DNA of 64,000 bases from Asterias rubens (taxonomy: Eukaryota): positions 4,154,001-4,218,000 of the forward strand of contig NC_047082.1 in the NCBI RefSeq assembly GCF_902459465.1, given 5' to 3'. A program made the translations under genes and the position numbers. Below the pieces are notes generated by a model that was not told the origin of the DNA, made no database searches, and saw nothing but the letters and a program-made list of their open reading frames with translations. Every line of letters begins with the position of its first letter. Within the stretch, counting starts at the first letter, position 1. Below are positions 1,981 to 50,474 of this stretch, one piece after another.

Positions 1981-2780
1981 TTTTTAATAACAATTTAAAT
2001 TTTTCAACTGAATTTGTAATTTATTTGTTTATTTTTTCATAGCAGTTATGACCAATCCGGGCTAATTAAAACAATAATTAGGATTATACCATGTTCAGAT
2101 AGCAATTGATGTGTTAAAGGCGCAAAAATGGAAAAAATCTTTAAGAAAGACCATGTGATGACGTCATCATTACGTCATTTTACAGTTAACGAGAACTTGC
2201 CAATATCAAACAATGCACGAATTGTCAACATAATCGCGTCATTACTTTGAGAGTTACACGACTTCAAAAAGTGCACCTTTAATGTCGCGTCACGTGACCC
2301 CCGATGACGTCATTTAAAGTGATTACAACAAATTTCACCACAGACAACTACAAAAAGTAAATTTTGAAGAGTTTTCAACCTGCCGCTAGAGGGCGCTGTT
2401 GCAATTTGTGACGTCATCAATATTTTGTTTGAACTGTCCACCCTTGCTAGACACTTACGTCCTGGAAAGCAACTTCATAACTTTTACCACTTTTGAGTTA
2501 CAGGGCACTTACGTTTTTGGCCCGTTTCGACCGGAAGTAGATGTCATGTTAGGTCAACCACACGAAAAAAAAATGAAGACCTAATTTACCCATACCCAAT
2601 CCCGCAAACAGAAACCTACGGTCCGTTTTGGCTGATTTGATATAGATTTTCAAACATTTAACATAAAACACAATTAAGAAGACGTTATGTGACCGGTGAT
2701 GACGTCATCATGACATCATTGCCTTATGATCATTATTGCACCATAACCTTCGATCCCTGAAAGTTTCATTGCAATTGCTC
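1981..2780 (+). repeat. About 800-bp TGACGTCA-rich repeat, second copy about 4410-5187
   Basis: Direct alignment of the two copies; probably a transposon fragment, family unknown. Confidence 0.9.
2381..2400 (+). promoter_or_regulatory. CTCF-like motif TGCCGCTAGAGGGCGCTGTT (identical at 4799-4818 and 36889-36908)
   Basis: Matches the CTCF core consensus CCGCTAGAGGGCGC; binding is not shown. Confidence 0.55.
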
Positions 2781-3603
2781 TTTAGGACCTATGCAAAATT
2801 TCGGCATTGGGAAATAGGTCCCTCTTCTGGTCACTCAAAGTCCATCGAGGGAATAGACGTACACTAGTTGCCTCATTGCCAGTCAATATGTGTATATTGG
2901 TAACTCCCTGGAGTACTATTCCCCGGGAATTTGCACGGTCGTTTCATGAAAAACGTTTTAGCCCGGGGTTAACTTCCTACCCCTGAGCAGGGTTATTTTT
3001 TTCCAGGAAAACGCTATATTCCGGGCAACTCTCGGGAAGTGAAAAGATAGGCCAAAAGTTCCCGGGAATTTCCCAGGAAATACCTTTAGTGTGAAAAGGG
3101 GCTTGGTAGTGAAACAGTTTATTAGCCCGCCTTCGAACCAAATACACAAGCTGCGGCAGCCTCTGGTAAAAATCGATATTGTATCATTAGTGCTGTCATA
3201 ACAACTCAAACGACTGGAACAGTGAGTTATTTACACTGCCGGGTCTATTTTTAACAAAACATCAACAATTATTTGGGGAAATTTCATCAGTGCTACCGAA
3301 TAGACTTCTGACGATATTAAAAATGTCAGTTCAAGATCGCTTGCTGCTTCCGGTGGTTGAATGGATGACCCAGTAAAAGGGAGTGAGAACATGTTGATGT
3401 TAATAGAGTAGTGGACAAAAGGCATGACATGTTGGAAGGACAGGCGCAGCGCGAGTGGGAATAACGTCAACATTGTGCAAAGTAGTTAATTAAGAGTGAA
3501 CGGACACCAGTCGCAAGAATAATGTAGAAGGAGAGGCTCGCATCTTACCCTATTTTTTTGAAGAAAACAAAAAAATATATATTATTGTTTGTACTTGTTT
3601 TAT

Positions 3604-3642
3604 GCCTCTGAAGAAGGTCCGGATTGGATCGAAAGCTAAGGC
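3604..3642 (+). ncRNA. Minimal type I hammerhead ribozyme motif, copy 1
   Basis: GCCT-CTGAAGA-A-GGTCC(ggatt)GGATC-GAA-AGCT-A-AGGC. This gives stem I GCCT/AGGC, the conserved CUGANGA and GAAA boxes, stem II, a palindromic AGCT in place of stem III, and a CUA cleavage triplet ending at 3638. Confidence 0.8.
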
Positions 3643-3768
3643 CATCTACCCTATTCATTATCCCTTCGGGGTGATCCCCTTGATTTGCTTGTATTTTGTT
3701 TTTAATTGTCATAACCATATCCATTTTATCTTTTCCCACTTATATGTAATTGTTTGTACTTGTTTTGT

Positions 3769-3807
3769 GCCTCTGAAGAAGGTCCGGATTGGATCGAAAG
3801 CTAAGGC
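3769..3807 (+). ncRNA. Minimal type I hammerhead ribozyme motif, copy 2
   Basis: Identical 39-nt motif 165 nt downstream of copy 1; predicted cleavage after 3803. Confidence 0.8.
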
Positions 3808-3909
3808 CATCTACCCTATTCATTATATATGTAATTATATATAAATAAATTATTAAGATGTGTGCCGCTTTACAGATAATCCAGAAATGCTAAATAGCCA
3901 GAAAGTATC

Positions 3910-4278
3910 TTAAAGGCAGTGGCCACTATTGGCATTTACTTAAAATAATGTTTCGCATAAAACCTTCGGAGCTGTTGATAGCATAACACATTGTGAGAAA
4001 CGACTCCCTCTGAAATAACGTTGTTTTCGAGAAAGAAGTAATTTTCCACGAATTTGATTTTGAGACCTCAGAATATTATTTTAGGTCTCAAAATCAAGCA
4101 TCTACCGCACACAACTTCGAGTGACAATGGTGTTTTTTCGTTCATTATTATCTTATTATCTCGCAACTTCGACAACCAATTGAGTTAAAATTGTCACTCT
4201 TAGTTTATGCATATGTTAATATACACCAATTGAGATGACTGGTCTTTGACAATTACCATAAGTGTACAGTGTCTTTAA
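3910..4278. mobile_element. Kolobok-like MITE family A copy
   Basis: TTAA|AGGCAGTGG...CAGTGTCT|TTAA; about 370 bp with the family internal sequence. Confidence 0.85.
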
Positions 4279-5187
4279 GCCGCAATCGTTTGTAATCTTT
4301 TTATCAGCTTTTGGTGGTATTTGATCATGGGTAATATTGTGCTATAGGTCCATTTCCATATTACCTATATTTGATTTCTGTTTTCTGTTGTGTGCATTTG
4401 AAATAACATTTTAAATAACATTTATAATTTTTCAACTGAATTTGTAATTTATTTATATATTTTTTTTTTCACAGCAGTTATGACCAATCCGGGCTAATTA
4501 AAAAAATAATTTGGATTATACCATGTTCAGATAGCAATTGATGTGTTAAGGCGCACAAAGGGAAAAACCATGTGATGACGTCATCATTACGTCATTTTAC
4601 AATTCACAAGAACTTGCCAATATCAAACAATCCACGAAGTTTCAACATAATCGCGTCATTACTTCGAGAGTTATACGACTTCAAAAAAGTGCACCTTTAA
4701 TGTCGCGTCACGTGACCCCCGATGACGTCATTTAAAGTGATTTCAGCAAATTTCACCACAGACATCTACAAAAAGTAAATTTTGAAGAGTTTTCAACCTG
4801 CCGCTAGAGGGCGCTGTTGCAATTTATGACGTCACCAATGTTTTGTTTGAACTGCCCACCCTTGCTAGACACTTACGTCCTGGAAAGCTACTTCATAACT
4901 TTTACCACTTTTGATTTCACAGGGCACTTACGTTTTTGGCCCGTTTCGACCGGAAGTAGATGCCATGTTAGGTCAACCACACGAACAAAATATGAAGACC
5001 TAATTTTCCCCTACCCAATCCTGCAAACAGAAACCTACGGTCCCTTTTGGCTGATTTTCAAACATTTAACATAAACACCTTTAAGATGACGTCATGTGAC
5101 CGGTGATGACGTCATCATGACATCATTGCCTTAGGATCAATATTGCACCATAACCCTCGATCCCTGAAAGTTTCATTGCAATTACTC

Positions 5188-6711
5188 GGTCCATTTAGGG
5201 CCGGTTCGGCAACCATCACACGATTGTCAAACGGATTAATGTCCATTGTGTTGGGCTTATAGCTTTGACTGTTGTATAGTAGACTATGAATATGAATTTC
5301 AAAACTAAAATGTTCAAACGCTTTATTTTATGCGCTGTGTTTTTTCATTTACAAAATACTTGTCAAAAGATACCACACATACTTTTTTTATCGTGAAAAA
5401 CGATGAAGTATAACCTGACATTCTACTTTTACCTCTTTATGTCATGTATTTGCTGGTTGGCTTTGCCTAGCGCTGGAAACGTCAATGTATCTCACATGGG
5501 TACATCATGTACATGTATACATGCATTTGAGCGTTCGAGACGAACTCAGTTTGTGGTTGATTGTGACCAACTAAGAATGTTTCCCAACTAATGTGTTTGT
5601 TTTTAATAAACGTATGACCAGGTTGTTGAATTTGGGTGTGATCTGCAAATAGGACGGTTATAAGTACGTCCTCGTCTGAAGGTTTATTTGTGAATACTTT
5701 TACATTTAAACATACTGTTAGCATTGGAGAAGAAATACCTTTGCATTAATAAAAAGACTGCAATAAAAAATATCGAATGTATGTGTGTGCAATTGTTTGT
5801 TTTATGATTAAGTGGAATAAATGAACTGATCTTATTATCAGAACATTTGTTTATACCCGTCCCGTTTTAACGTTTAAGTTGACATCGAGTAAAGATAAAG
5901 CCCCTCTATGTTTAACGTTCATCAGACAATCTCGTGCTTTAATATAAATAAGTTTCATGGAAAAGTGTAAATGAATTTGGAGTCCGTCTTGTGATTTGGG
6001 GAAAATCTGAAACATAAATATTACAAATCTGTGAAATTATAAATGAATAGTTTAATAACTTTTTATTACAAAGACACATCATGTTAAATCTCTTTTTTGA
6101 TGTGTGTGGCTCTGAAAAGAAAAAAAATAAGATTATATAGTCTAGATAATGTGACCAAAAGTTCGTCAATACAAACGAAATGAGGAATTTTCATTTCCCC
6201 CAATTTTCACAGCGGATCGCGGTAGGAAATCGTTCACCGCGATCCGTTAACCATCTTATTAATTGGAACAGCCTTGTTAAATATTTGTATGATTTCCGTT
6301 CGGTCCTACCTCTCAAAATCAAGAATCCCGAATTTTGTCGACTTGAATTACATAACAAGATGTTCAATGCCGTGTTTTGCCCCCCAAAACCTATTCATTC
6401 ATGATGCTAAGAAAAGCTACTACCTGGGCGTACACGCACCCACCCATTGTTACCAGTACTCCTGGCCGTGGAGGATTAGTCGTGATTAACGAGGGATTAG
6501 CGGTGGAAGTGTCAGTGACAGCCTGGTTTTGGCGAACTCCTTCGTTAGTTGTAAACCACAGTCAAGTACCAACTCTTTTGTGTTTCACCTAAGTAAGTCT
6601 TTCTATAATCTCTGGAAACGATTGCGTGCCGAAACTCAACCGACTGACCCTCTGTAAAGTAATCGTTTGCGGCAATCGTGTGATGGTTGCCGAACCGGCC
6701 CTAAATGGACC
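5188..6711. mobile_element. About 1.5-kb non-autonomous TIR element
   Basis: 40-bp perfect inverted termini cggtccatttagggccggttcggcaaccatcacacgattg ... caatcgtgtgatggttgccgaaccggccctaaatggaccg. No TSD and no transposase ORF. Confidence 0.85.
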
Positions 6712-7549
6712 GCGCGCATAACATACCATGTCTAAGTTACTTAGCACAACTAGAGTTTGCACAATGTAAAATGGAATTTTAACTGGTGACCATTTTTTGG
6801 GTATTCTGGCATGGTTTTCTTTAAGGGCAATTCCATGGTCAGTCGCATTGCACTTTTCTGTGTAATTTCTTGATCTTAGTGCTAGTAGTTCTGTGTGAGA
6901 TATTCTTTCCACTAAGTTTATATACTGACTTGTACTTGATATCAAAGGCTTTGAATTGAGGATATAAGAAATGTTGTGGGGGTGTCCTCTGAACTTAATA
7001 ACGTTTAGTTGTAAAAAGAGGTCAGTCACATTACAAAAAAGGACATGGTAAAAATACACTGTCAAAATTCAAAAGTTTCCTCTAACTTAAAAACTTGCGA
7101 AAGTTTTACTACATGTAACACACAACTCTTATACGTGAGTATCCAACAGGATACTTATAAATGGTCAGCAACTTTAACTTTTAGGTATACATGGCAAAAC
7201 CACGCTCAGTCGCTTTACGGTCAGTCCAGTTTTCCAGTCAGTTTAGCCAAACCTCATGAAGCCCAAGCTTTTTATTCCGCAAAATTGGGTTAATTTCCTC
7301 GTCAACAACTAAAAATAAATTGGTTTCATATGTTTGTTATAAATTCTAAGTGGAAAGAAAGCTGTGACAGTTTTTGTTTGCTTTGATTTGCCCATAAGCT
7401 TTAGCAGCTCATTTAAATTGGGATCTGACCAGTTATGTTATTCACATGACGTGGTACTCCAGCAAGCATCCTGACCCTACCTTTAAGTACTATCCAGCTC
7501 CAAACATTTTATGTAAAGAGACTACTTGTTTCTGATTGACTTGTTCCAG

Positions 7550-7719
7550 GTACCTGGGTGTGTTTTGGTGAAGGTACTATTGACGTGCAGGACGAGAGAT
7601 GGAAGGATGGTCAGCCAAATAGTAACGGCAATGAGGATTGTGCTTTTGGGGAAGATTCAGGCTGGTTCGATTATAAATGTGACCGTTCCGTTAAATTAAT
7701 CTGTCAGCGCCCTGCGTAA
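7550..7719 (+). pseudogene. Orphan C-type lectin terminal exon (unit A); exon 1 absent from the window
   Basis: Intact acceptor and open frame TWVCFGEGTIDVQDERWKDGQPNSNGNEDCAFGEDSGWFDYKCDRSVKLICQRPA*. Homology to the unit B intron starts at about 6714, right after a TIR element. No matching exon 1 is seen upstream. It could be functional if exon 1 lies left of the window. Confidence 0.65.
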
Positions 7720-8046
7720 ACCAACACAATATGAAAGGTTGCTCAATAATCTGAGCTAACTACTTCTTATAAGGATTAAAGGGGTAGGTGATTAACTGCT
7801 CATTCGCTTTGTGATAATCCTTTTTTTTTTACACCAAGCCACTATTTACTTTTAATATTGGGCTCATTAGTAAGAAGACAAATTAATGTTGCATGCATGG
7901 AGTCATCCATCTTGATAGTTTAATCGAACTATATAAAACTAAATTTATCTGTCACAGCCTCTCTCTGTCTCTATCTCAACTGAGAATGGATAAACACTTG
8001 CATGTAAATCGTTTACTATAACAATTATTTCTGGTTATAATATCAC

Positions 8047-8428
8047 TTAAAGACCTGGACACTCTTGGTAATTGTCAAAGACTAGTCTTCTCACTTGGTG
8101 TATCCCAACATAAGCATAAAATAACAAACCTGTGAAAACTTGAGCTAAATTGGTCATCGAAGTTGCGAGAAAATTAAGAAAGAAAAAACACCCTTGTTGG
8201 ACAAATTTGTGTGCTTTCAGATATATAGGAATAAAATACTTCTGGCTAGAAGTCCTTTATTATTTTAGTGAATAATTACCTCTTTCTCAAAATTTATGCT
8301 GCTTCGAAGGGAGCCGTTTCTCACAATGTTTTATACATTCAACACTGCTATCCAATGCTCGTTACAAAGTCAATTTTTAAGTAAACATTTTGTTTTGAGT
8401 AATTACCAAACGTGTACCTGTCCTTTAG
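8047..8428. mobile_element. Kolobok-like MITE family A copy (empty site present in unit B)
   Basis: TTAA...TTAG flanks; the paralogous site near 13920 has a single TTAA and no insert. Confidence 0.9.
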
Positions 8429-10609
8429 TTAATATTATTGTTCACACAGTGCCCGCAACAACTAACACGCAGAAATAAAGTTCATTCTCATTATTTTGGT
8501 AATAATATAGTTTCATGATTGTGTGAAACAACTAATATAACGTCAATGTTTCGAAAATGTTTCACCAAAAATGCATTTGTGTTAGTACATGCTCAGCACT
8601 GACACCATAGTGACGTCACCGTTAATGTCAGCCCTCTTATAATCAAGTTTTCAGTATAAAACATGACCCTATTTTTATGTTCCTGTAACAGAGAAGCAAT
8701 ATATATTTGTTAAAGATATTAAAGTCGTTTTTGGAACCTTACAATTCTTTCTATGTAAAGAATTTGCAAATTGTTCTACAATCTTGTAAGGAAACTCTTT
8801 AGTGAGGCTGTCATCTTTAAAAAACTGATTATTGCAAACAAGTTTTCATAGCTTTAAAAAATGGTAAATTAGCTTCAGGATAAATAGTATTCATTTTATT
8901 GTTTGAGAGTTATTCGCAAAGTGCAATTTTAAATATTGTTTTTGGCATTGTTATTGTATCAGTATATGTAGTAGTAACCGGTTTACTGTTTAATTTAATT
9001 TAATTATTAACATTCACTAAGTTGGAAAACTGAAGCATTATTAACTTTAAAAACTTATCAGGCAAAACACTACTTCACGCTAACTATAGGGTAAGTCTTA
9101 GAGGTAAGTCTTAGAAAAATCCCCTTTTTGGTCCCAAAACAGAACTAACATAATATATTCATGTAGAATGATCAGGCAGATACCCAACATAAGAAAACAA
9201 ATCACTAAAATCAAAGATTATTTCAGTGTTGTAGAGAATAAAACGTTGGGTCAGGAACTCCTCAAATTTGTGTCGAACGATTTCGCGTTGTAACTAAACT
9301 GCTTCTTTGATTCATTATGAACTAAAAACACTTAAATTGTAAGTTTAGATACTCTAGATGTTTTTCAAATAATTATGTGAACTTCGTTGAATTATATGTG
9401 AAATTTGAATCTTAACACATGAATTTTGGTATCCGTCAAGACAATAGTATCCGTCAGATTAACACATAAGCAAACAATAATTGATGTGAACGATATAAAT
9501 AGTATTGATGATGTTTATTTTTTGAAATACTTGCCCAGCACTGAAAGCTCGAAATAAATTACTGCACAAAAAGCCATGTTTTACTCAGCCTCTCAAAATT
9601 ACAATGCGTTAAACTCTTATACCAACTCGACCTCTAGAAATTAACCTAACCAAACCCCACCCTTCAATTAACCCCTAACCAACCCCGACCTAGACTTGAC
9701 CTCTGGCTTTATCGTCTGCACATGAATCTAGGTGAAAGGTGAAGATGGACGAGGATTAACCATGAGACCTTTCTTTTGTTGATAAACAAACCGCCTTGGT
9801 TGGCATGGTCGGCCGAATGTTAGTACAACACTCAATCGTAAAAACTGATGTTTCAACAAATTTCAACATTTACTGCAAATTTTCAATTAAATAAAATACC
9901 TCTCGATATAAGTTGCTTTATTTTAAACAAAATCAACAAATTTTGTTACATTGTTACCAAAATAGCGATCTATTCTTGATTTGCACTTATGGCTTTCTAT
10001 AGTTTTGGCAAAAACTCGGGCTGTGACGTTGCAAAAGAAAGGTCTATACTCTGTATGGCGTTATTCACGAGAGGCTCGAAGTGTGACGTCAGATGTTCAG
10101 GCTAGCCCCGACCCTTCAAAATATTAACCCGAATGGAAATGAACCAAAGGAGGTGGAGTCAAAAGAGGGCGCTACCAGTTCATTTATGCACTTATTTAGG
10201 CACGTAAACACCATGCACAGGGTCCAATTTCATAGATCCACTTAAAAAAGATCTACTCTTTGATTTTGCAGCATTGGCCGCCATCTTTGATGAAACGTGC
10301 ACGCGTGCAATGCTATCATTGGCTGAGAGTTGTGCGCAGCGCGTACACGCGCCATGCATTTTTCAAAGATGGCGGGGTCAATGACGTCATGTGAAATCTT
10401 TCTATATCAACAGTTGAGGATACCGGTATGTGTACTTCAAGGTTTCCTTAAGTAAGATGACGCCATGCACTTACGTCAATCCAGCCGCCAAAGATCTTTG
10501 AAGTAAACTTTAATGAAATTATGGAATTTCCAAACAGGGCTGGCAAAATAATTTTAATTAATGAGCAATCTCCTTATGATCTCAGAGTAGATTATTCAGT
10601 GCTTATCGT

Positions 10610-10973
10610 TTAAAGGCAGTGGACACTATTGGTTATTACAGAAAATAATTATTAGCATAAAAATTACTTGGCAACAACCAATCGAGAGCTGTTGATAGCT
10701 CAAAACATTGTGAGAAACGGCTCCCTCTGAAGTGACGTAGCTATTGAGAATGATGTAATTTCTCATTCATTTTACATTAGGCCTGAACCTTTTATTGGCG
10801 TTTTGACAGTACACAAATTTGTGCAACAGGGTGTTTTTCTTTCAATTTTCTCTTGCAACTTCAATATGAACAAATGAGTCAATAACGCTCACAAATTTGA
10901 TGCATAGTTGTGATACACCAAGTGAAAATACTGTACTTGTATTTTACATTTAAAAGCTGTCCGGTGCCTTTAA
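10610..10973. mobile_element. Kolobok-like MITE family A copy
   Basis: TTAA flanks, family TIR and body. Confidence 0.85.
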
Positions 10974-11344
10974 GCGATTTACTACGTTTACTAAGCCTTG
11001 CTGTGTACTACTTTTTTTTATTTTTTTTTTATTTTTTTATTTAACGACACGTTTCCAAACTTTCCTTGGCAGAGCTTCAAGGTTGGTAATTTTTTCTTGG
11101 TCGGTTTTTCTACGTGACTTCTACCGGAAGGCAATCGATCATAAAATTGTAGAATAGTTGTTTACGTTACTTGTTGCTTTTGTTGCCAATACCAATATTC
11201 AGTGAGTGCGAGAAGGGTTTCTTTCAAAGCTAACCGACCGTGCTCCTAGACTTCAAGGTTTCTTCGATTAAAATATTGACGCTATGCAGTGACGTCAATA
11301 CAGACGCCATCTTATATCGGGCAGCAATTTCAATTTGTCAAGAG

Positions 11345-13614
11345 ATGGTCAGCAAAATGTTGGCGAGCAAACTGCTGGGTGTTGTTGGTTTATTTATGAT
11401 GGCAGACTACGCTGCTGTTAATGGGCGGTGTTGGAAGAAGGCCCGCGCCGGAGGGACACCTACTGGAGGGACAACTACCGGAGGGACACCTACCGGAGGG
11501 ACACCTACCGGAGGGACACCTACCGGAGGGACACCTACCGGAGGGACGCCTACCGGAGGGACACCTACCGGAGGGACACCTACCGGAGGGACACCTACCG
11601 GAGGGACACCTACCGGAGGGACACCTACCGGAGGGACGCCTACCGGAGGGACGCCTACCGGAGGGACGCCTACCGGAGGGACGCCTACCGGAGGGACACC
11701 TACCGGAGGGACACCTACCGGAGGGACACCTACCGGAGGGACACCTACCGGAGGGACACCTACCGGAGGGACACCTACCGGAGGGACACCTACCGGAGGG
11801 ACACCTACCGGAGGGACACCTACCGGAGGGACACCTACCGGAGGGACACCTACCGGAGGGACACCTACCGGAGGGACACCTACCGGAGGGACACCTACCG
11901 GAGGGACACCTACCGGAGGGACACCTACCGGAGGGACACCTACCGGAGGGACACCTACCGGAGGGACACCTACCGGAGGGACACCTACCGGAGAGACCTC
12001 TACCGGAGGGACACCGCCATGCCCTCCTTCTTGGAGCCAGTTGCAAGGCAAATGCTACAAGATGCATGATGCCTACGTTACATGGGAAGAGGGCAAGCAG
12101 ATTTGTGTTGAGTTGGGTGGGGTGATGGTTGTCCCTCAATCCGAAGAAGAATTACAACACCTCGACAACATCTTCAGTGGTCAATTGTTCTGGATTGGGT
12201 GCACCGACATTGTCGTTGAAGGTTTGTGCACAACTAGAAATTGCTTTTATTTTTCCCTTATCAATAGTTTTATTTTATGCCTTTTGAAGTTGGAAGTCAA
12301 CAACATTCTGAATTTTATTTTGACTTCACCCCTTTTTCGGCTCTCAAATCTGCGTATATACTGAATATCTACAACATTCATGAGGCATTCGCTTTATTTC
12401 CTATTTATACGTCGAAACGTTAACAAAATTACGTGAGTATTTGGCTGTGTTTCTAAAACAAATCATTTATTAAGTTGATATTTTATCAGCCTGGTGAACT
12501 TCTTTTACGATATACCTATTTATAGTCGGGTGCGCCCCATTGCAACATCTTGCTTCTCTTCATGAATAAAATTGTAAGTTACTTTATTCTAAAAGCCATG
12601 AAACATCGTATAACTTACCATGTCCAAGTTTACTTAGCACAACTAGAGTTTACACATGTAAAATGGTATTATAACTGGTGACCATTTTTTGGTATTCTGG
12701 CATGGTTTTCTTCAAGGGCAATTCCATGGTCAGTCGCATTGCACTTTCTGTGTAATTTCTTGATCTTAGTGCTAGTAGTTCTGTGTGAGATATTCTTTCC
12801 ACTAAGTTTATATACTGACTTGTACTTGACACCCAAGGCTTTGAATTAATGATATAAGAAATGTTGTGGGTTTGTCCTCGGGACTTTAATAATAACGTTT
12901 AGTTGTAAAAAGAGGTCAGTCACATTACAAAAAAGGACATGGTAAAAATACACTGTCAAATTTAAAAGTTTCCTCTAACTTAAAAACTTGCAAAAGTTTT
13001 ACTATACATGTAACACACAACTCTTATACGTGAGTATCCAACAGGATACTTATAAATGGGCAGCAACTTTAACTTTTAGGTATACATGGCAAAACCACGC
13101 TTAGTCGCTTTACGGTCAGTACAGTTTTCCAGTCAATTTAGCCAAGCCTCATGAAGCCCAAGCTTTTTATTCCGCAAAATTGGGTTAATTTCCTCGTCAA
13201 CAACTAAAAATAAATTGGTTTCATATGTTTGCTATAAATTCTAAGTGGAAAGAAAGCTGTGACAATTTTTGTTTGCTTTGATTTGCCCATAATCTTTAGC
13301 AGCTCATTTAAATTGGGATCTGACCAGTTATGTTATTCACATGACGTGGTACTCCAGCAAGCATCCTGACCCTACCTTTAAGTACTATCCAGCTCCAAAC
13401 ATTTTATGTAAAGAGACTACTTGTTTCTGATTGACTTGTTCCAGGTACCTGGGTGTGTTTTGGTGAAGATACTATTGACGAACAGGACGAGAGATGGGCT
13501 GCCGGTGAGCCAGATAGTAACGGCAACGAGGATTGCGCTTTGAGGGCTACTTCAGGCTGGTACGATAATGGATGTGACGTTTACACTAATTTAATCTGTC
13601 AGCGCCCTGCGTAA
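11345..13614 (+). CDS. Secreted C-type lectin with N-terminal (GGTPT)x38 Thr/Gly/Pro-rich stalk (unit B), 348 aa, 2 exons
   Basis: Exon 1 is 11345-12221: MVSKMLASKLLGVVGLFMMADYAAVNG (signal-like), 38 x 15-bp repeats at 11450-12019, then CPPSWSQLQGKCY...FWIGCTDIVVEG. GT donor at 12222; ttccag acceptor. Exon 2 is 13445-13614: TWVC...WAAGEPDSNGNEDCA...GWYDNGCD...LICQRPA*. Phases match (1/1). CTL hallmarks are present: WIG, the EPD sugar motif, WYD in place of WND, and the conserved Cys residues. Confidence 0.92.
11450..12019 (+). repeat. Coding minisatellite, 15-bp unit (GGAGGGACACCTACC) x38
   Basis: Seen directly. Internal variants are mostly ACA/ACG, which are synonymous in the GGTPT frame. 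Confidence 0.98.
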
Positions 13615-15173
13615 ATCAACACAATATGAAAGGTTGCTCAATAATCTGAGCTAACTACTTCTTATAAGGATTAAAGGGGTAGGTGATTAACTGCTCATTC
13701 GCTTTGTGATAATCTTTTTGTTTAACACCAAGCCACTATTTACTTTTAATATTGGGCTCATTGGTAAAAAGACAAATTAATGTTGCACGCATGGAGTCAT
13801 CCATCTTGATATTTTAATCGAACTAATAAATTCACAGCCTGTCTCTGTCTCCATCTCAACTGAAAATGGAGCAATACTGGCATGGAAATCGTTTACTATA
13901 TTTCTTGTTATAATATCACTTAATTAATTTTATTGTTCATAGTGCCCGTAAAAACTAACCCTTTAGAAATAAAGTTCATTTTTGTCATAGTATTATAGTT
14001 TCATGATTGTGTGAAATAAACATAACGTCAATGTTTCGAAAATGTTTCACCAAGAATGCAGTTATGCTAGTACATGTTCAGCATTACACCAATAGTGACG
14101 TTACCGTTAACGTCAGTGGAACATGACCCTGTTTTCCTTTTCCCTGAAACAGAGTAAATAGCAACATATTTCTTTTAAAAGATATTAAAGTCTTTTTTGG
14201 AACCTTACAACTCTTTCTATGTAAAGAATTTGCAAATTGTTTTACAAATCTTGTAAGGAATGTCTTTTCTGAGGCTGTCATCTTTAAAAAACTGATTATT
14301 GCAAACAAGTTTTCTTAGCTTTAAAAAATGGTAAATTAGCTTCAGGATAAATAGTATTCATTTTATTGTTTGAGAGTTATTCGCAAAGTGCAATTTTAAA
14401 TATTGTTTTTGGCATTGTTATTGTATCAGTATATGTAGTAGTAACCGGTTTACTGTTTAATTTAATTATTAACATTCACTAAGTTGGAAAACTGAAGCAT
14501 TATTAACTTCAAAAACTTATCAGGCAAAACACTACTTCACGCTAACTATAGGGTAAGTCTTAGAAAAATCCCCCTTTTGGTCCCAAAACAGAAGAACTAA
14601 TAACATATGATATTCATGTAGAATGATCAGGCAGATACCCAACATAAGAAGAAAACAAATCACTAAAATCAAAGATTATTTCAGTGTTGTAGAGAATAAA
14701 ACGTTGGGTCAGGAACTCCTCAAATTTGTGTCGAACGATTTCGCATTGTAACTAAATTGCTTCTTTGATTCATTATGAACTAAAATGAAATTGTAAGTTT
14801 AGATATTCTAGATGTTTTTCAAATAATTATGTGAACTTCGTTGAATAATATGTGAAACTTGAATCTTAACACATGAATTTTTGTTTTACCTATATGGTTA
14901 CACGATTTAAACAAAATTATGATGGCCCTGGAAAAGCCGATTGGTTTAGTCTCAACATTTCAACAACTGTACTCTCGTCGTTGTCACTGTCTCCTAAAAC
15001 GACTGCTTTAGAGCACACTACATTGAATAAACCAACCGGCTCTCACAGAGACATCACCTCAATTAGTTTTCAAGAAGAGACAACTTTATATGTGTCTCCG
15101 TCAAACTAACATTACTTTATTAAAAAGTGTATACCTTTAATTGATTTAATAATATGTGTCGATCTAACATTAA

Positions 15174-15660
15174 CCCTATCAGGAAAATTCTTTTGGCGAC
15201 TCAAGTGGGCGGGGGCGTGGCTTTAATATGATGCTCCTTTTTTTACATTATCACCTCAAACATTTACCTTGAACAAGTCGGTGATAAAAACTGTGGTATA
15301 TAGTTTGAACCTCTAAATACGGGCTGAACAAAACACAAGACAATAGCCGATTTTGATACGCCATTTTTAAATCGCAAACTGCATTTAACACTTTTACGTG
15401 AAACGGCAAAACCATTTTTACAGGAAAAATGTTTAATATAGTAAAAAAAAACGGAAAAACAACAACTACATTTTTTTCAATCGTTTGATGACCCAAGATC
15501 GAACAAACGGTTCGCATGGTAACATCTGACACCGAAATCAATACTTTTGTATACAAGTTATGATCCAAGATTAATATTTGGGAAACGAAATAGAAATTGT
15601 GCGATCGAATGAAGCGTTAAAACTTATGGGCAAAAGTATGGAACCCTGGTCCTGATAGGG
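15174..15660. mobile_element. piggyBac-like MITE, 487 bp
   Basis: TTAA|CCCTATCAGGA ... TCCTGATAGGG|TTAA; CCC/GGG termini with a TTAA TSD. Confidence 0.82.
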
Positions 15661-15766
15661 TTAATGGTGTTCTTGTTTAAAAGTTCTTTCACAGCACTGG
15701 AAAGTAATAATAAAATACATTACGCACAAAACCATGTTTTACTCAACAGTTCTCAATAGACTCATG

Positions 15767-16152
15767 TTAAAGACAGTGGACACTATTGGTAACTGTCAAA
15801 GACCAGTCTTCTCACTTGGTGTATCTCCACATATGCACAAAATAACAAACCTGAGAAAATTTGAGCTCAATTGGTCGTCGAAGTTGCGAGATAATAATGA
15901 ATGAAAAAAAAACACCATTGTCACACGAAGTTGTGTGCTTTCAGATGCTTGATTTCGAGACCTCAAATTCTAAATCTGGGGTCTCGAAATCAAATTCGTG
16001 GAAAATTACTTCTTTCTCGAAAACTACTCCACTTCAGAGGGAGCCGTGTCTCACAATGTTTTATACTTTCAACATCTCCCCATTACTCGTTACCAAGTTG
16101 GGTTTTATGCTAATAATTGTTTTGAGTAATTACCAGTGTCCACTGCCTTTAA
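15767..16152. mobile_element. Kolobok-like MITE family A copy
   Basis: TTAA flanks, TIR AG(G/A)CAGTGGACAC. Confidence 0.88.
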
Positions 16153-16744
16153 ACTCACCCCAATTCTGCATGGTCCTTCAATATTATTTCTAGCCAACCA
16201 TGACCCTTCACGACCGAATCTAACCATCCCCGACCTTCACAAATCAATCCTTTAATTAACAACCTGTCCCATTACAAGTAACCCTAACAACCCATCCCGA
16301 CCCTTTCAAAATTCGGTAATTTACTTTGAAGTAAGCGCTCAAAATAAATTTAACAAAGCACTGTGATATTAACACTGTGCTAGTGTAAATGAACAGTGTC
16401 AGTGAGAAAGTAAGCCAATTATACTCTTTGTGAACGTGACTTTCTGAACCATATCTTATTAGTTGCTCTAGTTGGACAAACAATTAAGAGATTTTGTTTA
16501 AAACCAAGCCTCCACATTGTTTAAACAGGAAGTCACGCTAGGCATAACAAAAGATTTCACGGTCCATTTGTCTTATAGCAGGGCTGTTTGGTAGCAAGGT
16601 TTCTAATACTGCGCCATTATGCATGACCCAAATTCATAATCAATTCGCGTTGCGCTGTGTCTTTTGTGTGACTCGACGAGTCGTGTTTTTACTGGCAGTT
16701 AAGGATCTCGGCGCAATTTGACAGCAATTTCAATTTGTCAAGAG

Positions 16745-17097
16745 ATGGTCTGCACTATGTTGGCGAGCAAATTGCTGGGTGTTTTTGGTATAGTTATGAT
16801 GGCAAACTACACTGCCGTTACCGGAGGGACACCTACCGGAGGGACCCCTACCGGAGGGACGCCTACCGGAGGGACCCCTACCGGAGGGACGCCTACCGGA
16901 GGGACACCTACCGGAGGGACACCTACCGGAGGGACCCCTACCGGAGGGACGCCTACCGGAGGGACCCTTACCGGAGGGACGCCTACCGGAGGGACACCTA
17001 CCGGAGGGACACCTACCGGAGGGACCCTACCGGAGGGACGCCTACCGGAGGGACCCTTACCGGAGGGACACCTACCGGAGGCCTAATATTGTGCTAA
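16745..17097 (+). CDS. Lectin-less paralog (unit C): signal peptide + 17 GGTPT-type repeats + LILC*, with one 1-nt frameshift near 17026
   Basis: 5' end aligns with unit B (cagcaatttcaatttgtcaagagATGGTC). Repeat 14 lacks one C of a CCCC run, which is either a real lesion or a homopolymer sequencing error. The tail resembles the unit B 3'UTR at about 13749-13805. Confidence 0.6.
16823..17080 (+). repeat. 15-bp minisatellite x17 with 90-bp higher-order structure
   Basis: Thr codon order is ACA,[ACC,ACG,ACC,ACG,ACA,ACA]x2,ACC,ACG,ACC,ACA. Confidence 0.95.
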
Positions 17098-18624
17098 TCA
17101 GAAAGAAACTTGTTTGCATGGAATCATCCATCACTAACCAAGTTTTAAGTTCAGTTTCCCTGAAAGTGGATAATTTTGCAAGTTCAATTATTAATATGTT
17201 TACATCTTTCTAAATAGTTCACTGGGCAGTGAGCTAACAAATTGTGATAAAGTTGGATTTGGTTATAATACTAGTTTCAAACGTGAGTGTTCAAAAATTC
17301 ATATTGCCATTGTCAGAAAATGACGTCATTGATAAAAATAAATTTCAACAAGAATGCAGTCGTAAGCTTTTTACGATGAAGTTTTCACGTTTCAAATATG
17401 ACTCCTTGGCCCAAGACGACAGTGATTGGATAGCGGATAGTCTAATACGCTCAGTTTTATCACTAAAGCGCGCACTCTGACGTCACGATTTAACCAACTT
17501 GACTGGCTCGCTCGGCATCATGCCGTAAGAGGGCGCGCTATAGCGAGTAACAACAAGTCTGAAACCAAAAATGTTAATTTTAAAACTTTATGAAAGTCGC
17601 TTATTGTGTAAAATCTTGCAAGGGAAACTCTTCTTTACTTTCTGGCATCTTTAAAAATTCACGACTCTATTAAAATTTATAAAAGTTTCTCTCTGAAGTA
17701 GCAACATGCATTCCAGTGGATTGAACTTTCTGAATGCCCCAATAGGCTACGAAATGTGCGAATTTTCTTGGAGGGAAGTTTTTTCTTACGGTTTCGCAGT
17801 ACAGCTATTGCTTTTCTGCAATAAACCTGAGTTAATTCAAATTTAAGTTGAGAAAATCTATATTTATTATATTGTATGTGATGGGGTTGATAATGTAAAA
17901 GTTGAACACATGTTTAGTTCAACCCGTGAAACACGATTTGAACAAAACGATTGGCCGCGAAAAGCCGGTTGGTTTAGTTTCAGCATTTCAACTCACCGTC
18001 TCCTATAACGACTACTTTAGAGCACACTACATTGAATAAACCAACCGGCTCTCACAGAGCCACCACCTCAGAGTTTTCAAGAAGATAAAATTACATGGCG
18101 TATCCGTCAGACTATTAAATGGTGTAATAATATGAGTATATAATTTACGATATGTTGTTCATGTTTTAAAATAATTGCTCAGCACGGCAAGCTCATTGTT
18201 AAATACGTTCTGCACAAAATGACATGTTTTTAATAAACTTCTTTAAGGACAAGTCCGAAATTTTCCCTAAGCAACCCCGACCCTTCCAAATGAATCTAAC
18301 TTGCCCTAATTAACTAAAATCCCTTAAGCAACGAAACCCATATACCAATCCCGACCTTCATACACAGTTTACCCTAACCAACCAAATAGATGACACAAAA
18401 TTGATTTGGAGAGTAGACTCATTCCAGCCCTCTCAATTCAACCAAGTGAAGATTCATTCTAATCATCACAAGAAACACACAAATTCAATCAAGCTGTGAA
18501 AAGAACAAGCGTGTTCAATCAACCAAAACCATTGAGCAAGTTACAGACCCGATGGCCCCTGTTGCAAAGTCGATACACCAGAGTGCTTGCTTCTAAGTAA
18601 CGACGCCCTCTAACTCCTAATCAA

Positions 18625-19250
18625 TCACCACTAACCCTCCCTCCCCAACCACCCACTAACCCAACCTCCCTCTGCAACCACCCATCATCCAACCCTACTT
18701 ACCAAACCACCCTCCTCCCTAACTCATAAACCTACCCCCCCCCTCCCCAACCACCTACCAACCAACACTCCATCCCCAAACAGCCCAACAAAACCAACCG
18801 TCCTTGCCCATCCTCACTCCCCAACCACACCAACCTCTCTCTGCAACCACCTATCAACCAACCCTCCCCAACCAACCTCCTCCCTAAATACTCATATACA
18901 CCCAACCTCCCTCCCCAACCTACCACTAACCCAACCTCCCTCTGCAACAACCTATCAACAAACCATCCATCAACCAACCTCCTCCCTAAATACTCATATA
19001 CACCTAACCTCCCTCCCCAACCTACCACTAGTTGTGACAACGCAACCCCCCTCTGCAACCACCTATCAACCAACCATCCATCAACCAACCTCCCCCTAAA
19101 TACTCATATACACCTACCCTCCCTCCCCAACCTACCACTAACCCAACCTCCCTCTGCCCCCACCTATCAACCAACCATCCACCAACCAACCCTCCTCACC
19201 AAATAATGTACTCATAAACCTACACTCCTCCCCAACCAACAACCCTCCCA
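18625..19250. repeat. C/A-rich degenerate minisatellite (period about 85-105 bp)
   Basis: Recurring cctccctccccaacctaccactaacccaacctccctctgcaacc...taaatactcatatacacc; almost no G on the + strand. Confidence 0.9.
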
Positions 19251-21026: not shown

Positions 21027-24000
21027 ATGGGCCCTCTTGTGGGGGAATGTGGCCATTGGGGTCTGGCTGTCGTAACCGCCTCGTTCACTGTCCATCTTCT
21101 GGTTAAGGTGGTAACACGCTGTGCTGGAGTATTGTTTCTAAGCTTTCAAAATGAGTTCCAGAGTTCAACTGCACAGACAGGCGCCATCTTTAGTATCATG
21201 TCATCCTCATCATACATAGGAAGTAAGAATTACTTATCTTTAGCCACTAAAAACAACAAAGTGACAACGGAAATATGACCCGAAGTGCTAACAGTTTTCC
21301 TTGTTAAAAGAAACATCTCGAACTCGGCAGATGATCCAACAGAACCAGAAGAAAATATCATCTCAGTATTTACAGAATTACAATTAATAACAGGCTACTG
21401 TTTTTATTTTACTTCGACTACAAATCATTTCAATATCTAGGTCCGATTTCGAGCCGAATTGACCCCAAGATTCAGATTGAATACCTCTTTCAAAGACTCG
21501 AAAACATTACTGTAAAAATCCATTACAATTCCATCCAACCAATCAGCAGGGCTCTTATTTATATAATTCACTTACTTCTGGTACACAAGATCATTGATGT
21601 ATCGTCAGGACCTCCTCTCAATCGGTGGGCAAAAGTCACTGATATTTATTTATGGTTTATTTTTTATTTATTCAGATACGATAGGTGGTGTGTTAGGGAA
21701 TCATCTGAACTGTCGCTCTACTGCTATACTTGGTAGTATATTTTACACTGCTGGGACAATAAGCTGCAGCTTTACAACAAATATTTATCAGATGTACTGT
21801 ACAAGTGCTCTGGCAGGTAAGATACAGGCATAGGCATCTAATACATGTACTTCATATCAATCGCGGGGAATCTATAGACACACCAGGGGTGGATTTCACA
21901 AAGAGTTAGGACTAGTCTTATCTCGAGTTAGGACCAGTTACTCGTCCTAACTTTAGGACTATCCATGCAATGTGTATGTCTCCTAGGACTAGTCCTAACT
22001 TTGTGAAATCGACCCCAGGCCTGAAAGCCACTTCAAGGCTACAACCCATTTTTTCTTTGGCCCGTTGCCACCTACTCCAGGGCTGAAACAGGGTTACCCC
22101 CTTTACAGTCCATACGGATGTAGGCTTGGGTACAATTATCCACCCAAGCCTGGCTGGTAGAGCCGAAAGCAAGCACTAACTCCCCAACTTCACGAAGCAA
22201 TCATGATCAAGTGTCGCGCTAGAATGAGAATGAGAGGTCACGTTCCTGACCAACTGGCCGGGTATATATTATCATCTAAAAGGCTGGTGTAAAAGTTAAA
22301 CAGCAAACGTGAGTGTATACATGTTGTTTTAATACGTATTTCAGGTATTCGGGTGCATTCAGGTCTTCCCAGTGCAGTTTCTCCCCTGTCTTTCGTTACA
22401 AGATAGACCATATTTAATAAATTAGAATAATCACAAATTTTCTATTCTGGTTGCTGTGTTCGAAGATGGGAGTCACCTTCTGTTATTTTCAGTCGATACT
22501 TTACTAACTGGTATACGCTGAATACATGGAAGTCACAAATGATGTAAGTTTCCCTTCTTTCCTTACTGTAGGACTAGGTGGTGGAATTACTGTAATACCG
22601 GCAGTTGTAATGGTCGCTAAGTACTTCAAGAGATATTACCCCTTAGCGTGTGGAATTTCAACATCTGGACTTGACATTGGAATGTTGGTGTTTGCTCCAT
22701 TGATGCAGCTATTACTGGATACTTATGGATGGAGGGGAGCAATGCTCGTAACTGGAGCATTTGTGGGTAATGTTTTTGCAGCTGGGGCACTTTTTCGCCC
22801 AGTACGGTCGTCTTCACAGACAGGAGACAAGAAGAGCACAGAAGAACATGTTGAACAAGGGGAAGACAAAGAAATGCTGAAGGATAATAATGAGAATCAC
22901 AGATCAACGCAGAGTGAAGATCATGGAATCAACGAAGTGAAGACCCAGAACCAATTACAAAGTACCGATGCAACGAACATCACTTTGAAGTCGCAACGCC
23001 AGAGGAATCTATTCTCCGCAGCCGCCAATTCACTTCGGCTACATCTTCTCAGTGAATCTTATCGCCTCTCTTTGATTATCTTCGCTCAAGTCGTAGCTTA
23101 CCTCGTTGCTTATACTTGTTTCATTATGTTCTTAGTCCCATTTGCCACATCATCTGGTATTTCAGAGCAGGATGCATCTTTTCTTATAAGTGTCTGTGGA
23201 ATTGGCGGGATTGTTGGACGTCTTATTTGTGGAGTCCTAACTAAGAAAGCCTCATCTTACGTCATCTACCAGGTGTCCATGTTTGTGAGTGGATGTGCCG
23301 TCTTGCTGGTGCAACTTGGTACGACCTGGATTTACATTTCTGCATCCATGGTTGGAATAACATACGGAATACAGTACACAATCTGGCGGGTGATGATGCT
23401 GGAGTTAGTTGGAGTGGATAACATGGGGTCTGCCATTGGAATCTACTCAAGCATTGGGATTCCCTTTACAGTCACAGTGCCCATCTTATCAGGTACCGTT
23501 CCCTTGTATCAATTGATAATAAATTTCAAACATGAATGCAAGGTGATTCTCAATATTTGGACTATCCAAGTTCCTTACAAGCTAACACAATAGCTAATAC
23601 AAATTTAACATAAACTTTCTTTTAAAGACAAGCAAATCATCTGCCATGACTGATCGGATGTGTGCTTCGGCCACGGCTTGAATTTAAGTTCCAAAATAGG
23701 CCGTGTGAGCTATAAAATGTCTTCCATCGACGTGGCTTCGAATTAGAAGGACAAATCCCAAGAGCCAATCCAAGGTTCAAAGTCGACGGGGAAAAGCTTA
23801 AAGAAACAAATGACACTCCAAACTGTTTCACAAAGTTGTTATTCGTTCTTTTAGAGTTTTAGCAGAAGACCTGGCCGGAGAGTTTAGCTCAAATTGTTCG
23901 GTTTATAGCAAAAGGATTTCTGGCATGTATATATTCATTGATATATATTATTTATTTTTACACAGGAGCCCTCTACGATACAACCGAGAGCTACTCTATT

Positions 24001-50213: not shown

Positions 50214-50474
50214 TATACAAAGGAGTTGGTGGTAAAAAATACCAAGTAAGTGTCGTTCAGTCAGCAAGCTGTATAAATGAAAGATTTATTGTGTTATTTT
50301 TTTTCTCATGACTGCATTCCGTGACTCCAGCCAACAAATATCTCGAGAGCAGTATTAATCGCATGAGATCCGTTACCGCAACCAACATTTAGCGACTTGT
50401 TCCTAAGTCTATAACAAACAGCCCAGTAACTGTTACTTACAGGGCCTTGGCTTGGCTGACGGAAAACAAGCTGT

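Follow-up and report, generated by a model that had tools for sequence, protein, structure and literature searches.

A tandem C-type lectin cluster in the sea star Asterias rubens with one intact gene and two probable pseudogene relics

Organization of the cluster and its three units

The window analyzed here, a 64-kb stretch of Asterias rubens DNA, contains three tandem units, which we call A, B, and C. Self-BLAST aligns A 6715-8050 to B 12607-13923 (92.3% identity), A 8425-9430 to B 13920-14884 (87%), and C 16722-17081 to B 11322-11709 (86-88%), and the sequence downstream of C runs colinear with the B 3' flank at ≈70% identity. These matches and the colinearity of the C flank confirm that the three-unit cluster described in a first-pass annotation is real. 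Its features are listed below.

6715 to ≈9720, + strand: unit A, a 5'-truncated copy of B
6715 to 7549, + strand: relic A intron remnant, the last 835 nt, 96.9% identical to B 12607-13444
7550 to 7719, + strand: relic A exon 2, the C-terminal 56 CTLD codons with QPN and WFD; stop codon at 7717-7719
7720 to 9720, + strand: relic A 3'UTR and 3' flank, with the spacer motif at 9536-9582
8047 to 8427, no strand assigned: A-specific MITE-like element of ≈385 bp within the A 3'UTR; terminal inverted repeat TTAAAGGCAGTGGACAC, TTAA on both sides
11345 to 13614, + strand: gene B, two exons, 348 aa
11345 to 12221, + strand: gene B exon 1, encoding the signal peptide, NGRCWKKARA linker, stalk, and N-terminal CTLD half; ends in phase 1 at GAAG/GTTTGT
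11448 to 12015, + strand: gene B repeat array, 37.9 copies of a 15-nt unit with 97% matches, encoding (GGTPT)38
12222 to 13444, + strand: gene B intron, GT..AG
13445 to 13614, + strand: gene B exon 2, the C-terminal CTLD half with EPD and WYD; stop codon at 13612-13614
13615 to 16302, + strand: gene B 3'UTR and 3' flank, with a candidate AATAAA at 13968 and the spacer motif at 15692-15740
15170 to 15664, no strand assigned: B-specific MITE with 11-nt terminal inverted repeats CCCTATCAGGA and TTAA flanks; the site is empty in A and C
15767 to 16153, no strand assigned: further copy of the abundant MITE-like element, splitting the B 3' flank; contig depth 1e5-1e6
16646 to 18356, + strand: unit C, an older copy of the B unit, with flank ≈70% identical
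16646 to 16744, + strand: relic C upstream block; the family-conserved 5' block is kept, without ≈45 nt that include a TATA-like box (alignment A2)
16745 to 17086, + strand: relic C ORF, 113 aa, comprising a signal peptide, 13 in-frame GGTPT/GGTLT units, and a frameshifted tail
16819 to 17081, + strand: relic C repeat array, 17.6 copies with 92% matches and its own 6-unit higher-order pattern
17084 to 18356, + strand: relic C former 3'UTR and 3' flank, with the spacer motif at 18180-18230

Gene B is complete, as the first-pass annotation had it, with a splice joint that we modeled on an annotated A. rubens paralogue; the exon 1 donor is the donor of that annotated gene. The protein opens with a signal peptide and an odd cysteine, continues into 38 GGTPT repeats, and ends in a C-type lectin-like domain (CTLD) that the intron divides; exon 1 is 68-79% identical to other Asterias lectins. 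Against the Pfam Lectin_C profile (PF00059; 107 positions, cut-off 22.6 bits), exon 1 matches positions 3-48 at 25 bits and exon 2 matches positions 68-107 at 20.5 bits. The CTLD residues are all present (CPPSW, KCY, QIC, WIGC, EDC, GCD, and LIC), and B carries the full domain with its cysteine framework (C0-C0', C1-C4, and C2-C3) and WIG motif. The stalk that follows the signal peptide is a long in-frame Thr/Pro array of the mucin-like tandem-repeat type, comprising 190 residues (75 G, 76 T, 37 P, 1 E, and 1 S). Searching with the homologue P0009, we found that the best solved-structure match of the family CTLD is the carbohydrate-recognition domain of DC-SIGNR/CLEC4M (E = 6e-20). The B site reads EPD with WYD, in contrast to the canonical site-2 EPN or QPD plus WND. 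Mature B has an odd number of cysteines (nine), so the one in the NGRCWK leader probably has no partner within the chain and could form an interchain disulfide.

The proximal promoter of B deviates from the family consensus; a candidate CRE and TATA-like box lie at 11290-11320, and the polyA site would fall near 13990. An exact contig covers B 13463-13615 in run X11, and contig depth in X11 and X9 ends near 14020 in the B 3'UTR, whereas DNA run X3 continues beyond it; the shape of this coverage suggests that B itself is expressed. Because B is absent among the proteins returned by our searches, it seems to be unannotated. The NGRCWK cysteine would form an interchain disulfide, giving a putative dimer, and the (GGTPT)38 stalk is predicted to be a heavily O-glycosylated, extended mucin-like rod. 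At the C terminus would sit a DC-SIGN-like carbohydrate-recognition domain with a noncanonical EPD/WYD site that may bind sugar. From these sequence features, we infer that B may act in solution, probably as a dimer, as a long-armed agglutinin or pattern-recognition lectin. The locus adds to Asterias an apparently unannotated lectin whose mucin-like (GGTPT)38 stalk is exceptionally long.

Homology between A and B begins abruptly at 6715 (B 12607), within a moderately repeated element, and contig depth is raised over B 12420-13250 in all runs. Unit A had been described as retaining the lectin exon only. It does hold a single exon but not a lectin module, as the lectin domain spans two exons and A has only the second, less than half of the domain. 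This exon covers 56 of about 125 CTLD residues with its acceptor and reading frame intact, is 83.5% identical to B exon 2 (77% in the core, whose A-specific letters span 7574-7695), and matches Lectin_C positions 69-107 of 107 at 18.3 bits, under the cut-off. Without C0, C0', C1, and WIG, A does not amount to a full CTLD. It also has no promoter, no signal peptide, and no N-terminal CTLD half, which includes the Cys partner of the C1-C4 disulfide, and a stop codon lies three codons upstream of its splice acceptor; the polyA-signal region is kept. No other CTLD or signal-exon piece for A occurs in the window, including the 6.7 kb upstream, so A is without an exon 1, and a separate exon 1 or CTLD piece serving it is ruled out. 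An exact-product look-up of the ORF spanning the A junction returned nothing on record, and junction patterns had 0 matches in JGI metagenomes. The A exon peptide found best single-domain matches of only 62-65% identity in a representative library, and A-type letters were not reported in short Logan contigs, which come from runs of uncertain kind. A is a partial duplicate that starts inside the intron and carries the last exon alone.

Unit C has, as previously noted, a signal peptide and repeats only, with its frame broken by a 1-nt deletion in the array near 17028. It contains neither the NGRCWKKARA linker nor any CTLD sequence, and its stop codon comes from the former 3'UTR. Four lesions mark C: an internal deletion reaching the 3'UTR, the frameshift, absence of the Cys linker, and absence of the TATA-like box that four Asterias paralogues possess. 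C 17084-17132 aligns to B 13747-13805 (score 21 versus a shuffle maximum of 17), and the rest of the C flank is colinear with B 14019-16302 at ≈70%. The C array shows block duplications of its own. C is an older duplicate of the full unit that lost everything from mid-stalk through 132 nt past the stop codon; this deletion fused the repeat array to the old 3'UTR (junction at 17082-17086), with the frameshift and promoter damage coming later. An exact 267-nt contig in an independent metagenome DNA run covers C 16567-16833, the upstream and signal region, and a 723-nt contig from a run of unknown kind is ≈93% identical to C 17085-17760. The protein search returned no homologous short protein or CTLD-less relative of C (a weak negative), and an exact-product look-up of the C ORF found no such gene on record.

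We counted exactly three copies of the motif CAGCAC..CAMAA..CATGTTTT in the window (9536, 15692, and 18180), where 0 are expected, and one downstream of an A. amurensis paralogue. The earlier observation of a related spacer after each unit therefore stands, but the spacer is part of the 3' flank shared by the duplicated units. Being colinear with that flank and found also in A. amurensis, it is neither an independent signal nor a mobile element; it is inherited flank. The abundant MITE-like element has at least 15 copies in the window by self-BLAST and is absent at B 13920-13925. Mobile-element insertions within the cluster are specific to individual copies and younger than the duplications.

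Patchwork divergence between units A and B

Identity between A and B is unevenly distributed. Successive blocks diverge by 3.0%, 23.0%, 2.8%, 13.3%, and 2.5%, with an index of dispersion of 3.4-3.7 and identical runs of 194 and 175 nt, the longest of which has P ≈ 1e-4. This patchiness suggests that A and B exchanged sequence by gene conversion, which would leave near-identical tracts around an exon core that was either unconverted or repatched. In exon 2, dN/dS is 1.12 and dS is 0.175. When the 28 differences are polarized by an outgroup, 15 sites fall to A versus 12 to B, and A. amurensis P0002 matches either A or B at 27 of the 28. Among the six exon 2 sequences compared, A and B are mutually closest. 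In another A. rubens tandem pair, the exons have diverged ≈5 times more than the noncoding DNA, and this extends to synonymous sites.

The binding-site substitution between A and B that had been put forward is thus present, yet it lies within a patchwork that includes a noncoding block diverged in a similarly patch-like way (13%). Because dS is raised and this noncoding block is diverged as well, we rejected positive selection as the sole cause of the exon difference. Likewise, we rejected the idea that a known paralogue donated the exon core, as A and B are still the closest exon 2 pair among the six. Separately, we observe that A exon 2 has changed more than would be expected of a dead copy with 3%-diverged flanks, unless conversion explains it.

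Turnover of a lectin family and alternative readings

B is the only working gene of the three units, and A and C are likely pseudogene relics that are not expressed. We assign a probability of roughly three in four to the reading that the locus is an ordinary birth-and-death lectin cluster, consisting of intact gene B and the relics A and C. Repeated local duplication followed by decay would yield such a cluster. The locus has the hallmarks of a birth-and-death tandem family: paralogues of differing age, one truncated copy and one internally deleted copy, and copy-specific insertions. Noncoding divergence is 3-13% between A and B and ≈30% between C and B, giving their relative ages. A model in which a single duplication of an offset unit (exon 2, spacer, and exon 1) produced A, B, and C together fails, as C has its own 3'UTR and flank, ≈30% diverged versus the 3-13% of A and B. 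An intact tandem pair of the same lectin family lies at A. rubens locus L002.

The first-pass annotation's proposal of a birth-and-death family is accordingly supported, with stalk length and sugar-motif triplet varying across annotated Asterias members. Of the three routes to variety it named, stalk-length and sugar-motif change hold across the family, but domain loss does not, since A and C are broken. Nor are the lectin and repeat modules separately retained: A is half a CTLD with neither promoter nor signal peptide, and C has its four lesions. The suggestion that this was the window's best candidate for an undescribed system fails, as the locus holds no undescribed system; there is no new mechanism here but the normal turnover of a fast-evolving lectin family.

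One alternative holds that A and the C array serve as a sequence reservoir, trading patches of sequence with B by unequal exchange or by gene conversion in the germline and so diversifying the binding loops and stalk length of B. If true, the locus would be a minimal system in which a pseudogene reservoir diversifies an invertebrate lectin. The mosaic identity of A and B, with identical runs exceeding chance length, is consistent with such a role, as are the states shared with P0002 and the exon-biased divergence of the other tandem pair, but conversion between adjacent duplicates is expected without any selected role, the observed tracts homogenize flanks and carry no diversity into B, and plain multigene-family evolution fits the pattern equally well. 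We consider this reservoir unlikely. It is similarly improbable that the relics persist as suppliers of loops or stalk lengths to B or, alternatively, that C is expressed as a lectin-less secreted GGTPT glycopeptide.

Equally doubtful is the view that both A and C are retained, expressed members of the family, with C a lectin-less, mucin-like GGTPT peptide, A a half-module used via another exon, and domain loss a third route to variety. C does retain its ATG, along with a good signal peptide and an ORF of 113 aa, and an independent DNA sample contains the unit, as does, in part, a run from another organism. Its frameshift, lost TATA-like box, and lost Cys linker argue against a working gene, as does, weakly, the protein search that returned no CTLD-less relative. 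A retains an acceptor, frame, and polyA-signal region, and its exon has diverged as fast as that of B; against this, the 6.7 kb upstream contains neither an exon 1 nor a promoter for it, its half CTLD cannot fold alone without disulfide partners, and exon 2 dN/dS is ≈1.1.

That A, C, or their junctions are assembly artefacts, such as misjoined haplotigs in a repeat-rich stretch, is highly improbable: the A junction at 6715 does lie within a repeated element, and depth in DNA run X3 is lower over C (1-3) than over B (4-10), but block-wise divergence of A from B is 3-23% and A has a mobile-element insertion that B lacks, a difference too large for alleles, the C flank is ≈30% diverged, and an independent sample has the exact 267-nt contig over C (the coverage check spanned 12020-18009 and used short Logan contigs from runs of uncertain kind).

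The cluster is therefore best read as turnover, and it shows how this proceeds in a sea star lectin family, through stalk copy number, sugar motif, partial duplication, internal deletion, and patchy conversion. Its value lies mainly in a clean annotation and in background for work on echinoderm innate immunity.

Comparison with relatives and known systems

The cluster is a small tandem array whose members belong to a family of secreted C-type lectins that is specific to sea stars and evolves fast. Between eight and ten homologues from Asterias are 68-79% identical with the same signal peptide and NGRCWK leader, P0009 among them. Annotated examples of the family are P0001 (A. rubens) and P0002 and P0004 (A. 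amurensis), named "C-type lectin domain family 4 member M-like," P0009, the 222-aa A. amurensis "CD209 antigen-like protein C" with 14 GGTPT units and QPN, and P0010, "snaclec 27-like," which has a GGTTPST stalk. Like B, these are small secreted lectins with a signal peptide (MVCKMLASKLLGVVG..) and NGRCWK leader, a CTLD across two exons joined at the same phase-1 position, and a conserved 3' flank block; the 15-nt GGTPT repeat DNA is common to B and L003 (90.5% over B 11312-11625). Annotated Asterias stalks have 0, 1, 2-3, or 14 GGTPT units, or GGTTPST units. Sugar-motif triplets comprise EPN, QPN, QPD, EPS, and EPD (the last also in B), and the second motif in relatives is WND, WFD, WDD, WKD, or LHD, with A combining QPN and WFD. 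B differs from the annotated lectins in its 38 units, the longest stalk among those compared, its EPD/WYD site, and its proximal promoter, and the window cluster differs in having two extra broken copies. We found no description of GGTPT lectins in the literature.

Human CD209 and CLEC4M (DC-SIGN and DC-SIGNR), the best solved-structure matches to the family CTLD, are likewise encoded by tandem duplicates, and their neck consists of tandem repeats of variable copy number that set domain reach and oligomer state. The human receptors are type II membrane proteins whose neck repeats, helical and 23 residues long, form tetramers, whereas B is secreted with a cleavable signal and carries a stalk of 5-residue Gly/Thr/Pro mucin-like repeats ahead of the domain; no homology links the two kinds of stalk.

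The sea urchin SpTransformer (Sp185/333) genes are described as small two-exon genes in tight clusters with internal and flanking repeats, segmental duplications, and gene deletion (PMC5103432). They resemble the window cluster as an echinoderm immune-type family of clustered two-exon genes, but they encode an unrelated protein family without a CTLD, with far greater diversity and mosaic "element patterns" documented experimentally, to which the sea star data offer no counterpart.

Conversion from pseudo-V genes in the chicken immunoglobulin locus is somatic, enzyme-driven, and draws on many donors. As in that system, truncated, promoter-less copies here adjoin one functional gene and have patches in common with it. 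Unlike it, the sea star locus offers one relic exon and patchiness on a germline scale only, and it shows no sign of directed or selected transfer into B. With B complete in the germline and just one relic exon and one relic array beside it, the locus falls outside the dedicated diversity-generating systems of the VLR or chicken immunoglobulin type.

A long-stalk lectin gene at unit B

Unit B, the middle of three tandem lectin units (A, B and C) at positions 6715-18356, is an intact gene whose two exons join in a 348-aa open frame:

11345-12221, + strand, B exon 1
12222-13444, + strand, B intron (GT..AG)
13445-13614, + strand, B exon 2

The splice donor (GAAG/GTTTGT), phase-1 split and acceptor of B are those of the annotated A. 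rubens paralogue P0001, whose protein was reproduced exactly when positions 10001-10304 and 10831-11024 of the paralogue locus L002 were joined. Pfam Lectin_C matches each half of the B C-type lectin domain (CTLD), in which the predicted Ca2+/sugar site is non-canonical (EPD with WYD). A 15-nt unit, repeated 37.9 times at 97% identity, encodes the 190-residue stalk (75 G, 76 T, 37 P, 1 E and 1 S). Mature B contains nine cysteines, of which the one in the N-terminal NGRCWK is likely the odd one out and may join two B chains into a dimer. B is a notable long-stalk lectin that has apparently gone without annotation.

The proximal upstream region of B (11250-11309) departs from the conserved promoter block of the Asterias paralogues and duplicates a nearby segment, 10434-10490, ≈800 nt further upstream (score 33 versus a shuffle maximum of 23). 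Within the intron, 12420-13250 is a moderately repeated element with a contig depth, in the DNA run, 20-40x that of adjacent single-copy DNA, and homology between A and B starts inside it.

Contigs of four public runs (Logan contig sets, library kind uncertain) were compared with positions 12020-18009. X3, a metagenome DNA run, holds exact contigs at B 12185-12401 and C 16567-16833, so the 5′ part of C is real outside the assembly. In X11, one contig matches B exon 2 exactly and specifically (13463-13615). X11 and X9 have depth over exon 2 and the 3′UTR to ≈14019 and zero at 14020-14819, where X3 is continuous; such a profile would fit transcripts that terminate beyond the AATAAA at 13968, but the run kind is uncertain and DNA at low coverage would be patchy too. 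X9 also has a 723-nt contig ≈93% identical to C 17085-17760 (library type uncertain), 22% of C-specific words are present in X1, which carries a different organism label, and X10 (labeled "RNA?") covers intergenic pieces and not exons.

Anatomy of units A and C

C 16722-17081 aligns with the 5′ end, signal peptide and repeat of B, with ≈90% identity in the unique part, and is missing the 30-nt coding segment for NGRCWKKARA. The array of C (17.6 units, 92% identity) has its own 6-unit higher-order pattern and is shifted in frame by a 1-nt deletion near 17028; the ORF closes at 17086 with 113 codons. Immediately 3′ of the array, 17084-17132 aligns to the B 3′UTR at 13747-13805 (score 21; shuffle mean 10, maximum 17), and four further blocks are colinear with the B flank at ≈70% identity:

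C 17317-17360, matching B flank 14019-14062
C 17776-18140, matching B flank 14723-15133
C 18152-18230, matching B flank 15664-15740
C 18267-18356, matching B flank 16220-16302

The array joined to old 3′UTR, together with the colinear flank, argues that C is an older copy of the full unit from which an internal stretch, mid-stalk to 132 nt beyond the stop, has been deleted, which agrees with the earlier proposal that the C stop codon comes from old UTR. Upstream of C, the block conserved across the family is still present, but ≈45 nt are missing that in four Asterias paralogues include a TATA-like box (TATAAAA, TATAATA or TTAAAT). C bears four independent lesions. Across 16220-17819 in X3, depth over unique C parts is ≈1-3 versus ≈4-10 over the B flank; C may be a polymorphic copy or one with diverged alleles.

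Homology of A to B starts abruptly at 6715 (B 12607), within the intron, and extends through exon 2 (7550-7719) and the 3′UTR into the flank. Signal and exon 1 sequence are absent, and A therefore retains 56 of ≈125 CTLD residues, with the Lectin_C profile match limited to positions 69-107 and without the cysteine partners of those retained. A CTLD N-terminal half for A was found nowhere else in the 64-kb window, no convincing coding sequence was found upstream, and a stop lies three codons 5′ of the splice acceptor. The A 3′UTR is interrupted by a ≈385-bp MITE-like element (8047-8427) with TTAA at both ends, an insertion that B does not have. Judged from this anatomy, A cannot make a protein by itself.

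The first-pass annotation had assigned A a lectin exon, B a complete gene, and C a signal peptide plus repeat; the three units hold, and A amounts to less than half a lectin domain. Its proposal of a third route to diversity, in which lectin and stalk modules would persist apart from each other, finds no support in this anatomy, since A makes no protein alone and C has four independent lesions.

Mosaic divergence between A and B

Divergence between A and B alternates along the alignment:

Intron, 12607-13468: 3.0%
Exon 2 core, 13469-13590: 23.0%
Exon end and proximal UTR: 2.8%
Noncoding block, 13807-14250: 13.3%
Flank, 14251-14830: 2.5%

The mismatches cluster strongly (index of dispersion 3.4-3.7), and two stretches of perfect identity, 194 and 175 nt in length, are longer than expected at random (P ≈ 1e-4 for the longest; no simulation reached a second stretch of that length). 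In exon 2, dN is 0.197 and dS 0.175 (ratio 1.12), so synonymous sites have diverged as much as the old noncoding block. Polarized by A. amurensis P0002, 15 of 28 exon 2 differences fall to the A lineage and 12 to B, and among six sequences compared, those of A and B are mutually closest. The simplest reading of the mosaic is an older duplication (≈13-20% divergence) that would have been partially homogenized by gene conversion, with the exon 2 core left unconverted or re-patched. Some extra acceleration of the exon core is possible, since its divergence somewhat exceeds that of the other old block.

An intact tandem lectin pair of the same family in A. rubens (L002) shows a related pattern, with identities of 96-97% in flanks and intron, 80.9% in exon 1 and 91.8% in exon 2, and an exon dS of 0.18, ≈5x noncoding divergence. 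Exon-biased divergence thus counts as a family trait and gives no specific sign of A function. L002 1-20378 (LR699112.1) contains a ≈9.6-kb tandem duplication at ≈95% identity with two intact lectin genes, the upstream copy of which (393-1409) is absent from the called genes.

Flanks, neighborhood and relatives

The spacer motif CAGCAC..CAMAA..CATGTTTT, earlier noted after each unit, has exactly three matches in the window, one behind each (chance expectation, none), and one more lies ≈2.4 kb 3′ of A. amurensis P0009. By alignment, it belongs to the inherited 3′ flank and is followed by CCCGACC/CTAACC tracts. Two copy-specific insertions split the B flank, the second a copy of an abundant ≈385-bp MITE-like element whose terminal inverted repeats are TTAAAGGCAGTGGACAC, with TTAA on either side (the 64 kb contain at least 15 copies; summed contig depth 1e5-1e6 in all runs compared):

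15170-15664, ≈490-bp MITE of piggyBac type, perfect terminal inverted repeats (CCCTATCAGGA), TTAA duplication, B flank only
15767-16153, abundant MITE-like element, with further copies at 8047-8427, 10610-10974 and 3910-4279, and at least 12 more

Against 0.66 expected, the window contains 20 copies of the full CRE palindrome TGACGTCA, spanning 2159-17485 (for example 8611, 10084, 10382, 11290, 17321 and 17478), with 15 of the 20 in or just upstream of the cluster. One lies 55 nt 5′ of the B ATG, adjoining a TTATAT box, and ACGTCA half-sites are conserved ≈400 nt beyond the stop in A, B and C. This clustering and conservation hint at bZIP (CREB/ATF-type) regulation. Upstream of the cluster lies an 800-bp direct repeat rich in these palindromes (1981-2780 and 4409-5187, 2.4 kb apart at 90.6% identity), and a C-rich minisatellite just beyond the C flank (18630-19245; period ≈101-111 nt, 2.6-3.6 copies) has strong negative GC skew. 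No Rfam match to a hammerhead ribozyme was obtained at 3400-4000, at gathering threshold or E up to 1, although minimal forms may escape the models. The neighboring genes are unrelated transporters:

22526-23593, + strand, Major Facilitator Superfamily (MFS) ORF
48921-50267, − strand, SLC52 riboflavin-transporter ORF

The window is eukaryotic, with ≈38% G+C. A protein search with the lectin part of B matched exclusively Asterias proteins (68-79% identity), named "C-type lectin domain family 4 member M-like," "CD209 antigen-like" or "snaclec-like." This list of homologues, like the exact-match contigs in public runs, fits an Asterias species. These relatives share a signal peptide (MVCKMLASKLLGVVG...), the NGRCWK leader and the CTLD. 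Between leader and CTLD they have nothing, 1-3 GGTPT units, 14 GGTPT units (P0009) or ≈10 GGTTPST units (P0010), and their sugar-motif triplets are EPN, QPN, QPD, EPS and EPD. The variation in stalk length and motif that had been proposed is thus a real family trait, already visible in annotated Asterias proteins, and birth-and-death evolution of the cluster is likewise supported. Rather than the undescribed system once suggested, the locus is an ordinary tandem lectin cluster of two relics and one notable long-stalk member, in a family whose CTLD has DC-SIGNR/CLEC4M as its nearest carbohydrate-recognition domain (E = 6e-20).
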